Of a stretch of 64,000 nucleotides of DNA, positions 91 to 55,871 are shown one piece after another; positions within the stretch are counted from its first letter, which is position 1; the number at the start of each line of letters is the position of its first letter. A program made the position numbers and the translations under genes. The stretch is from Bugula neritina (taxonomy: Eukaryota; Animalia; Bryozoa). Where the stretch lies: NCBI GenBank assembly GCA_964035545.1, contig OZ037767.1:8008581-8072580 (forward strand), in the 5' to 3' direction. The notes beneath the pieces were generated by a model. It ran no database searches. It had not been told where the DNA came from and was given only the letters and a program-made list of their open reading frames with translations.

Positions 91-3000
91 CTCCACAATT
101 TGAAGAAAATGATATAGAAATAGCTACCAACTCGTCTCAGTGTATTCAATTGACAGTTAAAGGATTTAAATACCCAGGTGGAAATATAACTACATTTCAG
201 GTATGACTGAGCTACTGTAAAATATACTTATAACTGCAGTTTCTTTGTCCCTACTGGTAGCTCTTTTGTAATTTTACCTACAATGTTGCTACTTTGAGTT
301 CTGGCAATTTATTTTTGCTGATGCATTATAACATAAAAAGATATTTAAAAGCAAATAATTTGTTTTATAAAGTGATATTAAAATATTCAATCTACGATAA
401 GGAGATCTTTGTTTTATTATTAAAAAAAATTAAATAGTTAATGTTTTACCTCTTAAAAGTACAGATATACTAAAAGCAGTCAAACTTTTGCTTTGTACAC
501 TAGTAATATTCGACTCACACTATTGTTTTTATCCTATTTGTTTACAAAATTATTTAAACATGCAGTGTGATGAAATGAAAACTATTTATATAATAAATCT
601 TAAAAAGTTTGCAGCTGTGATGGTTTTGAGTGTGATCTTTAATATTATATTAGGCTCAGATCAATCTATTGCAAACTGTAGCTATATAACCTGCTACACT
701 TTTTGTTTCCTAAGCGTTTGAAATTGTACAATGTCAGATGCTATATATAATACATACACCTACATTATTATTAATCCAGAGCAAATGTAGTGAAGAAAGT
801 ACATGGACTGATCTTGACCTTAACCAAGAAACAGCAAGAAGTGTGTGTATCTACAGTCCCTATTCTGCAGTAAGCTGTGAAGTAAAAGCAAATAACAGTG
901 CTGGGGTTACAACAGAAGTTAAAAACATCTCAACTCTTTGTGCAGGTTGTCTAGTATATGTTTGCTTGTATTTTAACAGCTAGCTTGTTGTTCCCATCAC
1001 ACACTAATAGTAGAAACTCATGCAAGTTTATTGTCATTATTCCTGTAAATGTTTTTAACGCAGACTAAGAATCCATTCCGATGTAACACAGGAGTAATTA
1101 TGACTGGGCGCTTTTTCGGGCATAACCAATTGTCTTTACTCGGATTCGAACCCATGACTTTCTGTTCACTAAGTTAATGCTCTAACACCCAGTTGCTTTC
1201 TCACAGCACACTAGCTAATATCATGTGCATGCTACACAGATATGAAACTTTGTGCCCCAAATTCTTAAAGGGTGCATTTAAACAATATCGCTGTTGCTAC
1301 TCGTACAATATTATAATAATATACGTAACAGAAGTTGAACATTTTTGAACATGACTTGTTGGTTATTTGCTATTTCTATTTGAGGCGGATTAAATTTATA
1401 TTGTCTTAGTTATGCCTGAACTTTTTTTTATAAACTGTTACCTGATATTAAAAAATGCAGTTTAATAGAGTGCGACTGTTGTATAATGAGATTTTGAATT
1501 TCAGATCCAGAATTAATTGGAGAAATAGAACTGTATCAAGATTACATTTCTGAAAACAACACCAGAACTATCACTGTTAACATGACGCAGGTTAGTTATA
1601 AAAAGTATAGGTTGATACAGTGTCAGATAGATGTTTTAGATTTAGTAATGTTGTAGTACATTATAATATACTACTGTATTTTAATAAATATGAAACATGC
1701 ACAAACACTATAATAATCCAGTAACACAGTATGTCACAAATTTTTAACTATGTATATAAAAGTGGCAATGCATTATTTTTCATGCAACCTTTCAAATATA
1801 TAAGATATAATGCATTGAATGAATAATGAAGTATTTGCAATTTTTTGTTCAAATCATTATGCAGGTCAGTTATTTGAAATCTTGTTATGATTACCTTTTC
1901 TCTTTATTTAGGTAAACATAAATTGACTGCAGTTGATGTGACTGTGACTATGCTTCAATATTTGTTTTCTTCAACTCAATCTCCTAGAATGACAACCTTT
2001 TTTTTTAAATTTGATTTTAGAACATCACGACTAACTGCGAACAGGATATTATAACTTTAGAAGCTGGCATTGGTAATAGTGAATTTACTTCAGAATTGAC
2101 ATTCCCTAACTTAGCAGCTCACACCAACTACACTATAAAGTTAAGGTTTACCAACAGTGAGAGTATGTCAACAGAGAAGTCTATTGTTGAGAGGACTGGC
2201 GACTTAGGTAAGTGAATAATACCTAGCACAGAGTGTCTTGTACAATGGTGACGTTTAGATGTAATACTACTTTTCTGTAACTATAAAATAGATGTAAACT
2301 AACTCAATATTTGTTTAAAAATTACCATTGACTTAATCACAAATCCATTAAAACTTTTTTTCATTTTTTAAAGTGAAGTTTGATTTTTTTTTCTTAACTT
2401 TGATTATTTTCTAATGTTCTAGATTGAATTCAAAGATGTGTTATTGAAAATTTTTAATTTAATGCAAATTGTATAATAGTCTGACTTTCTCACTGTATTT
2501 TATAGCTCCTGAAACAGCTCCTGTATTGACTAGAAATGTAACCAACTCTAGCTGTGTGCACATAACATGGTCTAAACCAAAATTGCCTAATGGAGATATT
2601 AAGAAATACAAAGTAAGGCAATTTATATTGCTGCTGAAATTAGACTCTAATTGCAATCACCCAATGACCTAATTTAAAAATTTTGCCAGCTACAATTCCT
2701 TAGGCCTAAGCAATGCTAGAGTTGTGTTTGAAAAGCTTCAACTTACGCCAAGAAAACCATTTTATATTGAGTTCTGTCAATGATGTCTCTAATATGTTTT
2801 GTAAAGTTTGAAACATCATACTTATAACGCAATGTGCATTATCTCAAATAAGTGCTTTTAATAACCAGGCTACTTCTAAAATAACTTTGTTCACAGCTTT
2901 GGATTTCACATTCTTTGCATTCCTACCTTTTCCAACTGCAATTTTATTTACGATCAATTCTAACTTAAATTCTATGGGTAATGCAAAGCATCATACTTGA

Positions 3001-53800: not shown

Positions 53801-55871
53801 TAATCAGTTTCCTTGCATCTTAAAAGGTTTTGTGAGAACAGAGATAAAGCTTGACTATTATTTGCATGTGTGCATTTGTGTCAGCAAGTAAGAGTTCTGT
53901 TTTCAAAGTTAGACGTAGTAATTTGCCACTATTTGCAAACATAACTGTTAATTCTATTTATTTGGAAGCATTTCTATTGAGACCCTTCATAGACAACTCG
54001 TTTTAGTGTTTTCGCAGAAAGGCTGTTTTGTATTAGGCTGTTGTTTTTCATTGTTTTTTTATTCTGTCTACCAAAAATATGCTTTTTTATGTAATTATAG
54101 ACTGTATCGTAGTTTACATTTACAGGGTTCTACTGATGAGTATGTCAAAGTTATTAGTGAAGGGCACAGCTTTAAAGGTGTGTAATTCAGTTTATAAATT
54201 CATATTTTTACTCAAGTCTACTCAATATATTGTAGTGAATTTCTCAATTCACTATATCATGTGGGTCGACTTATACAAAGCTACTACACCAGGTTATTTA
54301 CGTTATAACAAGTTTATTATTTACAAGATACAATAATTGAATTACTACTAACATGAATTGTACGATTACATAACACTGAGCACTTGGCACACAACTACTC
54401 TAAGCTTAGTCCCAAGCTGCTCTGCCCGGCTAGCTACTTAGCGTGCTTCCACTACTGTAGCTAGCTCCACCTGCTATCAATTAACAGTCCTTCCTGATTG
54501 GCTGGTATTAGTGGTGCCACTGTCGACCATAAGATGTATGTCGGCTGGAAGTCGATATAGTCGACCTCCACAATAAGATAACATAGAGTCAACCCTTTCG
54601 ATATATAAACTAATTGTTAATTGCACTACTGAAATCCATTACCATATCATACAGATAAAGGAATTTTACAGACAGCGTTTACTATATGCTTCTATTGATC
54701 ATGTGTTCTAATATCTATATAAAGACATATAGATAATAATTCTGTTTCATTTAACTAGTGTGAGTTGAACAAACAACACTGCAAATTATTCAGACAAAAA
54801 TTTTAAAGATGATCTGAAAAAACTAGCTGTTTTTTTAAAGTTTCAACAGTTATGTGACTTCAATGTTAATTAATAATATTCCTTGTTGAGTTTACATCCC
54901 ATATTTCTACTGAATGTATAGTTCAGTTGGTTGTGGCTAATTTTTCTGGTTTAATAAATGATACTTATTATAGACAAATTAACACACATCTATATATGCG
55001 TGTGTGTGTGGCTCATGTGCATGTGCTTATGTGCGCGTGCATGTTGTGCGTGTCTAGTTTGTTTACTCACCTATTGCTGCTATTTGATAGAATTGCTACA
55101 TGTAGCTCTTTAATTTTAACTGATTGTAGTTCCTTCTACCACATGCTCAAACCCACCTGCTAGAGTTGGTACTAAGTCACCTACAAGAGATTCAGTGAAG
55201 ATTGGAGAATCTATACTTTATCAATGTAAAGAAGGAAAACATCAAGTAGGGGGAGACTGTCACCTACACTGTGTGTTGAATACTGAGTTGGTTACTGAAT
55301 GGAAAGGGGAACCAATGATCTGTGAAGACAGTACAGATTTCAACTCAAGTAAGACAATTCATGCATATAAACTAGCTATTACAGGTATTTTGTGCACGAG
55401 CTAAACAACTTTTTTACAAAGCACATATTATATAAAATCTATAACGGGATGTTGTGCAATGCAATATTTGTTTAAATAATGAATGCTATAACATATTTCA
55501 TAAAATTCTATTTTTGTTAGAAAAATTTATTCTTGTCAAAATGTTGTTACTAATTTTTTTTAGATTCGCCTATTGTGATTGGACTATCAGTTGGCCTGTC
55601 CTTAGCACTAGTAGTAATAATGGTCCTCACTGGTGTAAATATTATGTTAATTAGAAAGCAGTCTGTAAAAAATGATGAAAGCATTCGCACACCTCCTGCA
55701 GAAGATAGAAGCAATAAGTTAGAATATGATATAGTCTCTCCCACTGTGTCTGCTACTGCTAACCAACCCGTTTATATTAATAAAACATTTGAAAAAGAAG
55801 ATGAGAGCTATGAAGTGCTGCAAGACCAACCAACTGCTCCTGATAATGTTTATGCAGAAGTTTCCAATTAA
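32855..55871 (+). CDS. Type I receptor, ~1287 aa: signal peptide, 3 F-type (fucolectin) lectin domains, 5 FN3, RPTP-type membrane-proximal domain, Sushi/CCP, TM, Tyr-motif tail
   Basis: Manual exons: 32855-32930, 33747-33950, 34155-34382, 35837-36052, 39018-39245, 40264-40491, 41564-41797, 43363-43510, 43614-43801, 44155-44237, 44762-44966, 45759-45862, 45953-46121, 50252-50346, 50551-50749, 51042-51148, 51396-51588, 52046-52139, 52614-52899, 54126-54177, 55130-55348, 55564-55871. All GT-AG, total 3864 nt, one open frame. Signal MKVGVERLWLLIVMYSVCLSVSTAQ. The least certain junction is 54177 to 55130. Confidence 0.82.
33968..34011. repeat. Degenerate (TAGTACTA)n tandem repeat
   Basis: Seen directly, just after an exon donor. 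Confidence 0.75.
37245..37286 (-). ncRNA. Minimal type I hammerhead ribozyme (Penelope pLTR)
   Basis: Reverse complement of 38718-38759. Confidence 0.75.
38718..38759 (+). ncRNA. Minimal type I hammerhead ribozyme (Penelope pLTR)
   Basis: CTACT (stem I) - CTGAAGA - T - GGGTAC AGTG GTACCC (stem II) - GAAA - TAT - T - AGTAG (stem I'). CUGANGA/GAAA core with a palindromic ATAT in place of stem III. Confidence 0.78.
38819..38990. repeat. (TA)n microsatellite, ~170 bp
   Basis: Seen directly; abuts the Penelope arm. Confidence 0.97.
42551..42596. repeat. Perfect 20-bp inverted repeat with 6-nt loop
   Basis: CTTCCATCCTTCTTGTTTTT-ACTATG-AAAAACAAGAAGGATGGAAG. Confidence 0.9.
46398..50114. mobile_element. 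Non-autonomous long-TIR DNA transposon, Sola2-like foldback
   Basis: Termini GGGTCATTCCGTGTCAA...TTGACACGGAATGACCC; 4-bp TSD AATA (46394-46397 and 50115-50118); ~1.14-kb TIRs at 46398-47534 and 48970-50114; decayed transposase-like text (VQLLTLAPESWTI; VGRP...VVDFF.DDE). The element is clear; the Sola2 label rests on recalled family traits (GRG termini, 4-bp TSD, long TIRs). Confidence 0.85.
50465..50541. repeat. (TA)n microsatellite
   Basis: Seen directly; ends about 9 nt before exon 50551. Confidence 0.95.
52169..52222. repeat. 18-bp inverted repeat (hairpin)
   Basis: TATACAATAATGAGCATA...TATGCTCATTATTGTATA. Confidence 0.85.
54292..54583 (-). mobile_element. Possible solo LTR
   Basis: GC-richer ~290-bp island. 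The minus strand starts TGTTAT, ends ATAACC (imperfect TG...CA) and has AATAAA near its 3' end. No clear TSD. Confidence 0.3.

Follow-up and report, generated by a model that had tools for sequence, protein, structure and literature searches.

The window analysed here is a stretch of 64,000 nucleotides (nt) from chromosome 3 (C3, OZ037767.1) of the bryozoan Bugula neritina, positions 8,008,581-8,072,580, position 1 being its first base. The Darwin Tree of Life assembly of this species amounts to 216.00 Mb in nine chromosomes, of which chromosome 3 takes 32.42 Mb (PMC11480708). The window has a G+C content of about 30%, is made up of exons and introns, and holds two large genes, gene 1 and gene 2, that belong to an array of about 16 genes for type-I membrane receptors at C3 7.63-8.14 Mb, with one at 7.11 Mb. 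The array was mapped by genome searches in which exons of four kinds (juxtamembrane, Sushi, tail and lectin) and the Pfam phosphatase family PF00102 served as queries, and in a second layer by tblastn on 262 kb around the window. All members have a common 5' part, consisting of a signal peptide, F-type lectin domains and Fn3-like domains, and they end in one of two ways: with a transmembrane segment (TM) and tandem tyrosine-phosphatase domains, the first of which (D1) carries all catalytic motifs (5 genes); or with a TM and a tail of about 75 amino acids (aa) with three or four conserved tyrosine motifs (11 genes). An earlier reading made from the letters of the window alone (the sequence-only reading) had proposed a cluster of paralogous ectodomains coupled either to a phosphatase or to a tail, and had asked for tblastn searches for further paralogs; the array that these searches brought to light bears out such a cluster, with lectin/Fn3 ectodomains, well beyond the two genes. 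Within it, nearly the same ectodomain is found on both kinds of signalling end, and these 3' ends have been swapped inside introns.

Two subfamilies are discerned in the array. The gene-1 type counts one phosphatase-ended and three tail-ended genes, the gene-2 type four and eight, respectively; the Sushi domain before the tail belongs to the gene-2 subfamily, the juxtamembrane exons of which (n = 11) are 75-100% identical in aa. Genes to the left of about 7.99 Mb lie on the minus strand and those to the right on the plus strand. The members, by position on C3, are:

Gene 2; gene B, 8.074-8.092 Mb; and genes near 7.11, 7.67, 7.71, 7.74, 7.77 and 7.84 Mb: gene-2 type, Sushi and tail exons after the juxtamembrane exon (n = 8)
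Near 7.63 and 7.88 Mb, and gene C, 8.118-8.143 Mb: gene-2 type, phosphatase exons after the juxtamembrane exon (n = 3)
7.80-7.83 Mb: fourth phosphatase-ended gene of the gene-2 type, placed by its matching lectin exons
Gene 1, with a phosphatase end, and gene 1', its inverted twin, 7.931 to 7.907 Mb: gene-1 type
7.959 to 7.942 Mb and 7.983 to 7.973 Mb: two more tail-ended genes of the gene-1 type, without Sushi and without the furin-site exon

Gene 1 is a receptor phosphatase, with the following features in the window (all plus strand):

714..7331: ectodomain exons within the window, from fn3 and Fn3_PTPRU Pfam matches; boundaries approximate
About 783-959, 1498-1653, 2021-2212, 2463-2669, 3398-3607, 4460-4699, 5073-5312 and 5428-5646: Fn3-like coding stretches
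6134-6236: probable small exon (candidate)
About 7046-7319: juxtamembrane Fn3 exon with a dibasic site, KVKR (Fn3_PTPRU, 2e-4)
7941..7986: small juxtamembrane exon of 46 nt, phase-1 donor followed by GT
8427..8556: TM exon, preceded by AG
9235..19980: cytoplasmic exons, stop codon 19978-19980; exon boundaries partly approximate
About 11800-15891: D1, with DFINAS, KCEQYWP, WPDHGVP and HC-SAGVGRTG
About 16430-19977: second phosphatase domain (D2), with NRFPDILP and a WCD loop; degenerate

Three PF00102 matches exceed the cut-off in gene 1 (C3:8021652, 8023678 and 8026126), and the solved structures closest to its D1 exon are those of the protein tyrosine phosphatases (PTPs) epsilon, sigma, LAR, alpha and CD45. 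Genes 1 and C both carry HC(X5)R(S/T) and the WPD loop, and gene 1 also KCxxYWP and its PF00102 matches, as classical receptor-type PTPs do; activity is predicted for both. From its WCD loop and its signature, the D2 of gene 1 is probably a weak or inactive domain. A single TM segment lies between the ectodomain and the tandem D1-D2. Whether gene 1 has lectin domains could not be seen in the window, and the sequence-only reading had advised looking upstream of position 1: two intact F-type lectin-like exons indeed lie there, 5-8 kb away, at C3:8000128-8000391 and 8003455-8003799. Gene 1 has one Fn3 exon set more than gene 2.

Gene 2 was modelled from three-way conservation with its two downstream paralogs, genes B and C, and from the phase continuity that splicing requires. 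The predicted model has 22 exons, every intron being GT-AG, and one open frame of 1,276 aa (all plus strand):

32855..32930: exon 1, start codon and signal peptide of 25 aa, phase-1 donor; near-invariant in genes 2, B and C
33747..41797: exons 2-7, coding for three F-type lectin domains, each on a pair of exons (Pfam F5_F8_type_C, PF22633)
33747-33950 with 34155-34382: lectin domain 1
35837-36052 with 39018-39245: lectin domain 2
40264-40491 with 41564-41797: lectin domain 3
43432-43510, 43614-43801, 44155-44237, 44762-44966 and 45759-45862: exons 8-12, Fn3-like beta-sandwich region, from weak fn3 matches, conservation and the splice chain
45953-46121, 50252-50346, 50551-50749, 51042-51148 and 51396-51588: exons 13-17, Fn3-like region, on the same kinds of evidence
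52046-52139 and 52614-52899: exons 18-19, juxtamembrane Fn3 of PTPRM/PTPRU type (Fn3_PTPRU, 2e-9)
54126..54177: exon 20, small (52 nt), its phase-1 donor being the switch point
55130..55384: exon 21, Sushi/CCP, phase 1-1, AG acceptor
55564..55871: exon 22, TM (aa 1178-1199) and tail of 77 aa, stop codon 55869-55871

The lectin exons match solved F-type lectins (4gwi, 1e-10; FBP32, 3cqo, 1e-9; 2j1r, 2e-7; and 3le0). The juxtamembrane Fn3 carries a furin-type site, RSKR (aa 988-991), and the motif FTVGDGxxYNGYxNTKL, and it aligns to the structure of PTPRM Fn3-4 (8a16, E 1e-3). Exon 20 is common with the phosphatase-type genes, is 80-85% identical in aa in genes B and C, and is also present in gene models P0001 and P0019 of a draft assembly. 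The Sushi exon scores 19.4 bits with Pfam Sushi, just below the cut-off of 20.7; its cysteines and tryptophan align with CCP modules, and among those of CR1, Crry, DAF and MCP the best match is CR1 (9e-15), with 6e-6 for a single CCP (1gkg). Two apparent pseudogene lesions at about 43.55 kb, a stop (gene B) and a frameshift (gene C), were dismissed, as both fall inside a small intron. The intron between exons 13 and 14 holds a 3.7-kb foldback-type, transposon-like insertion (46395..50117) with terminal inverted repeats of 1.35 kb that are 93% identical. It ends in GGGTCATTCCGTGT and ACACGGAATGACCC, possibly with an AATA target duplication, is found in gene 2 only, without a counterpart in gene B or gene C, and does not belong to the receptor.

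The TM segment of gene 2 has no charged residue, and its tail has four tyrosines in recognisable motifs: Y1229 in LEYDIV, an ITIM (immunoreceptor tyrosine-based inhibitory motif); Y1245 in VYINK (YxN); Y1257 in EDESYEVL, a hemITAM; and Y1271 in NVYAEV (VYxxV). These follow the published definitions, [ILVS]xYxx[ILV] for the ITIM, [DE][DE][DE]xYxxL for the hemITAM, and YxN for the Grb2 type (PMC9546547, PMC12582321). The tail had been called an ITIM/YxN tail, and both motifs are there, although that description missed the canonical hemITAM and the C-terminal VYxxV. A canonical immunoreceptor tyrosine-based activation motif, or ITAM (Yxx[LI] x6-12 Yxx[LI]), is not formed by the tail of gene 2, in which YEVL is followed after 10 residues by YAEV, ending in Val. 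Nearly all 11 intact tails of the array keep the YxN and Y-E-V-[LM].

The evidence for exchange of signalling ends comes from two pairs. The closest phosphatase-type relative of gene 2 is gene C, 55 kb downstream. Introns included, the two are collinear at 81-90% DNA identity over window 32760-52913, a stretch that opens with the signal-peptide exon and closes with the juxtamembrane exon, with ectodomains 63-92% identical in aa per exon; next, gene C shares the small exon (80% aa) and goes on with TM, juxtamembrane exons, D1 (VHC-SAGVGRTG, WPDHGVP) and D2. Gene 1, in turn, has its tail-type twin in gene 1', inverted and 90 kb upstream, with 87-91% DNA identity over about 17 kb (blastn) and exons 88-97% identical in aa. 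Their likeness ends at a sharp point:

5791 (C3:7917825 in gene 1'), no strand assigned: breakpoint position in gene 1, from blastn blocks

Past C3:7917825, the DNA of gene 1' matches, at 92.3% identity, the closing 3.5 kb of a tail-type gene next to it, and farther downstream patchy phosphatase remnants are all that is left; gene 1 itself leads on to its phosphatase exons. This breakpoint displays the swap mechanism directly: recombination inside an intron. In both cases, 2 versus C and 1 versus 1', which are independent, a swap of 3' signalling ends by intronic recombination is seen directly, and near-identical ectodomains stand on unlike signalling ends within one cluster, which is what marks paired receptors. 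Exchange has reached the ectodomains as well. Among well-aligned informative sites of genes 2, B and C, the three possible groupings are backed nearly evenly, by 424, 434 and 600 sites, and the favoured grouping shifts along the gene (chi-square 204, 56 df, p ~1e-18). Since the preferred grouping varies in this way, tail-type and phosphatase-type neighbours have exchanged ectodomain segments, and by their site patterns each ectodomain is a mosaic of the others.

Paired receptors are characteristic of innate immunity in vertebrates, and the array was compared with these and with other known systems. The vertebrate families (KIR, LILR, Siglec, SIRP, CEACAM1/3 and CD300A/C) likewise are clustered paralogs with similar ectodomains and unlike signalling ends, ectodomains kept alike by exchange between neighbours, ITIM- or hemITAM-type motifs and, in some families, lectin recognition (PMC3533184, PMC5112662). 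The Bugula array differs from them in that one arm has, in place of an SHP-recruiting ITIM, a covalent tandem phosphatase; the tail arm lacks a charged residue in its TM with which an ITAM adaptor could pair, and bears mixed motifs on its own tail; the ectodomain is built of F-type lectin and Fn3 domains, not of Ig or C-type lectin domains; and the host is a lophotrochozoan. With the type R2B phosphatases (PTPRM, K, T and U) the Bugula phosphatases share a juxtamembrane Fn3 with a predicted furin-type dibasic site and FT(V/I)GDxxxYNGYxNTxL, and with these and other tandem receptor PTPs (LAR/sigma, alpha/epsilon, CD45) the single TM, the active-looking D1 and the degenerate D2. Unlike type R2B, however, their N-terminus consists of two or three F-type lectin domains, and Pfam scans, which covered every ectodomain exon of gene 2 and the exons of gene 1, gave only F5_F8_type_C / PF22633 and fn3, with no MAM or Ig domain; they are therefore not R2B members.

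Two receptor families from the allorecognition systems of colonial animals are loosely comparable. The Fester/FcoR receptors of Botryllus schlosseri, too, form a cluster of diversified type-I receptors in which a Sushi domain lies close to the membrane. Their FcoR tails carry ITIM, hemITAM ([DE][DE][DE]xYxxL) and an [A/D]VYxxV core, the ITIM and hemITAM being swapped between alleles or isoforms (PMC12582321), and comparably, in Bugula, gene 2 has EDESYEVL where paralogs have VNYEVL, and gene B has DVYAEV. The Botryllus receptors differ in having Ig-superfamily ectodomains and no phosphatase-bearing partner; the resemblance in motifs is probably convergent and we claim no homology. The Alr genes of Hydractinia similarly form a large tandem type-I family in a colonial animal, with many ITAM/ITIM tails and many pseudogenes (PMC9546547), but their ectodomains are Ig-like or Fn3-like without lectin, and phosphatase-ended members are absent; moreover, Alr1 and Alr2 have a demonstrated genetic link to fusion or rejection, whereas for the Bugula array such a link is a proposal. 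As to the F-type lectins (eel agglutinin, striped bass FBP32, oyster bindin and Drosophila furrowed), the likeness is in the sequence of the lectin domain and its occurrence in tandem, and furrowed is a known case of co-occurrence with CCP/Sushi and TM (PMC5712786). Most known animal members are soluble or adhesive, in contrast, and none has been described as fused to a phosphatase or an immunoreceptor-type tail; among the partners given in a review of the architectures of F-type lectins are CCP and TM, and phosphatases are not mentioned (PMC5712786). By this comparison the array resembles vertebrate paired receptors, Alr and Fester/FcoR in its logic and is a member of none of them, because of its F-type lectin plus Fn3 ectodomain, its receptor-phosphatase arm and the uncharged TM of its tail-type members.

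Bryozoans are colonial, and B. neritina hosts a symbiont that produces bryostatin. In the vertebrate paired receptors and in the Hydractinia and Botryllus families, inhibition to our knowledge always proceeds through a cytosolic phosphatase recruited to an ITIM. One lectin ectodomain wired either to a built-in phosphatase or to a tyrosine tail would, if true, be a third, independent and mechanistically shorter solution, and the sharp breakpoints reveal how its pairs originate: whole 3' signalling cassettes are swapped across phase-compatible introns. Our full-text literature searches found no description of F-type-lectin phosphatases or of bryozoan paired receptors. Nor did they turn up any bryozoan receptors for self/non-self or symbiont recognition, and the array thus supplies concrete candidate recognition genes for the phylum.

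We consider it rather probable that the array works as a paired system, with like ligands leading to a phosphatase output in one case and to a phosphotyrosine-scaffold output in the other. F-type lectin domains bind fucosylated glycans, and those of the array may do so on foreign, symbiont or conspecific surfaces. The furin-site Fn3 suggests that the ectodomain is cut into two parts held together non-covalently, as in LAR and PTPRM. On clustering by ligand, the D1 of phosphatase-type members would strip phosphotyrosine from nearby substrates; tail-type members would be targets of Src-type kinases and, once phosphorylated, would attract SH2 proteins (Syk/Shark, SHP/Csw and Grb2/Drk classes). 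In this manner, like ligands could bring about outputs that oppose each other or can be tuned. Vertebrate paired receptors do so too, but here the inhibitory enzyme would be part of the receptor itself. A narrower and rather doubtful proposal sees in the array a bryozoan locus for telling self from non-self, be it for allorecognition among colonies or for the discrimination of microbes and of the bryostatin-producing symbiont. The phosphatase would then be the inhibitory arm, with the same fucose-lectin ectodomain as its hemITAM/ITIM partner, and new pairs would arise by intronic swap of the 3' cassette.

Several observations weigh against the paired system or against parts of it. The fucose-binding motif of F-type lectins runs His ... 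Arg-x-Asp ... basic residue (PMC5712786). In gene 2 only lectin domain 1 keeps the His and the Arg-x-Asp (RQD), with a later Arg in CYRL and with spacers longer than canonical, that to the last basic residue included, and lectin domains 2 and 3 depart from the motif (RQN; RDGE). The tail, by its motifs, is ambiguous in sign, activating or inhibitory, because ITIM, hemITAM and YxN are mixed on it and because in five minus-strand paralogs the hemITAM position reads VNYEVL, an ITIM. In the ectodomain, pooled Nei-Gojobori ratios of nonsynonymous to synonymous change (dN/dS) of gene 2 versus genes B and C lie at 0.64-0.66 in the lectin exons and at 0.53-0.68 in the Fn3-like ones, and synonymous divergence resembles that of the introns; these ratios are elevated yet below 1 and do not show diversifying selection. 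Values of dN/dS per exon are too noisy to support positive selection, those above 1 resting on very few changes. The splicing and expression of gene 2 are inferred from genomic DNA, and the gene counts of the array outside C3:7.89-8.15 Mb derive from exon coordinates only. Finally, model P0019 of the draft assembly skips an intact phase 1-1 Sushi exon (L046:7071-7289), which may be a prediction error or a hint of cassette splicing; being of phase 1-1, the Sushi exon could be a cassette.

The main rival of the paired system is a cooperative model, in which the two types act together, the tail-type receptors being cis substrates, scaffolds or co-receptors of the phosphatase-type ones (as with CD45/CD148 on ITAM-bearing or Src-regulated receptors), or in which the family serves adhesion, the sensing of larval settlement cues or gamete recognition. 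We hold it to be improbable, albeit deserving of serious weight: ITIM-like and hemITAM-like motifs on one tail without a clear sign would suit it, as would ectodomain dN/dS values below 1; receptor phosphatases with a PTPRM-like juxtamembrane Fn3 classically are adhesion molecules; and F-type lectins act in fertilisation, as oyster bindin does (PMC5712786). Mosaic exchange and repeated swaps of 3' ends are, by contrast, what paired-receptor evolution predicts, though a co-receptor model fits them too.

That genes 1 and 2 themselves form a functional pair, as the sequence-only reading had it, is very unlikely. They are adjacent, on the same strand and of common domain order, and the divergence point claimed for them stands: exons 7941-7986 and 54126-54177 both end one base into a codon, followed by GT, after which gene 1 continues into TM and phosphatase exons and gene 2 into Sushi, TM and tyrosine tail. 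Nine of the ten peptides quoted in its support were found where they had been placed, on the plus strand; the tenth, 'KSFLLLL', actually reads RSFLLLLL (piece 6903-7331). The match of exon for exon also holds in so far as blastp of the open pieces gives five collinear matches in the same order (783-959 versus 45956-46135, 32%, E 1e-5; 1507-1617 versus 50254-50373, 35%; 2081-2212 versus 50623-50754, 25%; 5097-5243 versus 51041-51187, 33%; and, best of all, the juxtamembrane exon, 7038-7319 versus 52609-52908, 34%, E 4e-12), but identity is only 25-36%. In the last pair of peptides quoted, EDELLV... and TDEYVK..., the exons are homologous by position, size and phase, although 3 of 15 residues are identical, and a small exon had been overlooked in both genes (52046-52139; probably 6134-6236). 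At such identity genes 1 and 2 are old paralogs from two subfamilies, not partners of each other. Beyond the window, both have opposite-type relatives that are far closer: gene C for gene 2 (63-92% aa) and gene 1' for gene 1 (about 90% of nucleotides). Shared ligand specificity of genes 1 and 2 is therefore unlikely.

Another alternative, quite improbable in our view, takes the tail-type genes as untranscribed or non-functional by-products of recombination, or the Sushi-TM-tail as a separate small gene, with the gene 2 ectodomain secreted or spliced elsewhere. Decayed modules that follow genes 1, 2 and B speak for it; two of these lie in the window, where the sequence-only reading had overlooked such remains within its span of 91-55871:

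24441..25115, plus strand: decayed Sushi/TM/tail module 3' of gene 1, with intact Sushi frame (24441-24695) and acceptor
58932..59595, plus strand: decayed Sushi/TM/tail module 3 kb past gene 2, with a 1-nt deletion, first Sushi Cys lost and tail frameshifted

In the first, the Sushi is 70-80% identical in aa to that of gene 2, the tail acceptor has changed from AG to AA and the tail frame has a stop; a relic of the second kind follows gene B at C3:8095048-8095639. Also in its favour are four weakly similar Sushi-plus-TM/tail modules on chromosome 1 at 3.38-3.46 Mb (C1:3383144-3455678, L042-L045; 27-36% aa identity), which could represent a family of small tail-type receptors that is either related or ancestral. 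The three decayed copies give a picture of what neutral decay looks like, with lost acceptors, frameshifts and loss of the first Cys. The 11 intact tail copies of the array (38-55% aa identity) instead conserve acceptors, frame, stop position, TM and tyrosine motifs. Against distant paralogs their dN/dS is 0.35-0.57 for the tail, with 0.18-0.63 for the Sushi, and most comparisons of Sushi and tail find a significant deficit of nonsynonymous change, so that by these ratios both exons are under purifying selection. The full chain of 22 exons is open, moreover, and the Sushi exon starts in phase 1 at its acceptor after an intron of 952 nt (54178-55129). In an independent draft assembly of B. neritina both architectures recur, a tail-type (L046) and a phosphatase-type (L027). 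The AUGUSTUS models of that assembly were built with transcriptome hints (PMC7576161), and P0019 (L046:5098-7816) joins a juxtamembrane exon to the small exon and to a TM/tail exon. The juxtamembrane exon, searched against 1.84 billion representative proteins, gave 17 matches, with no long transcript-derived protein among them. As for splicing elsewhere, a search of the window 3' of the small exon of gene 2 found no relics of phosphatase-type TM, juxtamembrane or D1 exons, and the next phosphatase exons on the plus strand are 73 kb away, past gene B and the ectodomain of gene C; this gap, the intervening genes and the lack of a relic make it unlikely that 54177 is spliced to phosphatase exons beyond the window.

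It is scarcely credible, finally, that one gene makes both forms by alternative 3' exons, such as gene 1 from 7986 to the Sushi at 24441, since, although donor 7986 and acceptor 24441 are both of phase 1 and intact and the Sushi frame 24441-24695 is open, the next tail exon has lost acceptor and frame and no Sushi module lies downstream of gene C, so that this junction would at best give a soluble ectodomain-Sushi isoform.

Some further observations concern the 3' part of gene 2. The contigs of run X1, compared over 50200-56199, are short DNA unitigs from several paralogs or haplotypes, and no splice joints were found among them. One of them (record 8) covers the tail exon at 55555-55841 as a variant that differs in 5-6 of 287 bases, with K51R, I71M and E80 to Ser; none of the X1 contigs listed is identical to the assembly here, and the variant could be an allele or an unsampled paralog. 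The nearest copies in the second B. neritina assembly are only about 85% identical; with the variant contig, this is no more than a hint of the extreme allelic polymorphism that marks invertebrate allorecognition loci (Alr, fuhc/Fester). In the intron before the Sushi exon, 433 bp (54231-54663) are absent from one X1 contig, which has 17 other letters instead, and the summed unitig depth over this segment reaches about 10,000, compared with about 100 in its surroundings. The segment is a short repeat of high copy number, and its insertion here is polymorphic. Microsatellites of CA/TG type (24233-24425 and 54958-55110) lie 100-200 nt upstream of both Sushi exons and, from this position, appear to be part of the duplicated module.

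Elsewhere in the window, long TA-rich microsatellites occur at 38788-38999 and 50401-50590. An intronless open frame of 252 aa (22598-23353), charged and coiled-coil-like, lies between gene 1 and the relic Sushi module; it has no match in Pfam and occurs only once in the 262 kb around the window. Short dispersed repeats of the kind of short interspersed elements (SINE-like) are found at 61135-61345 and 1015-1192, each type with at least 40 copies genome-wide, at 83-86% and 70-83% identity, respectively. In the genome at large, at least 158 exon matches to PF00102 indicate that receptor phosphatases are strongly expanded in B. neritina. More tandem arrays of phosphatase genes lie at C1 3.97-4.23 Mb, C5 0.49-0.53, 1.31-1.51 and 2.14-2.31 Mb, and C6 8.02-8.43 Mb, and F-type-lectin exon matches lie near several of these arrays.

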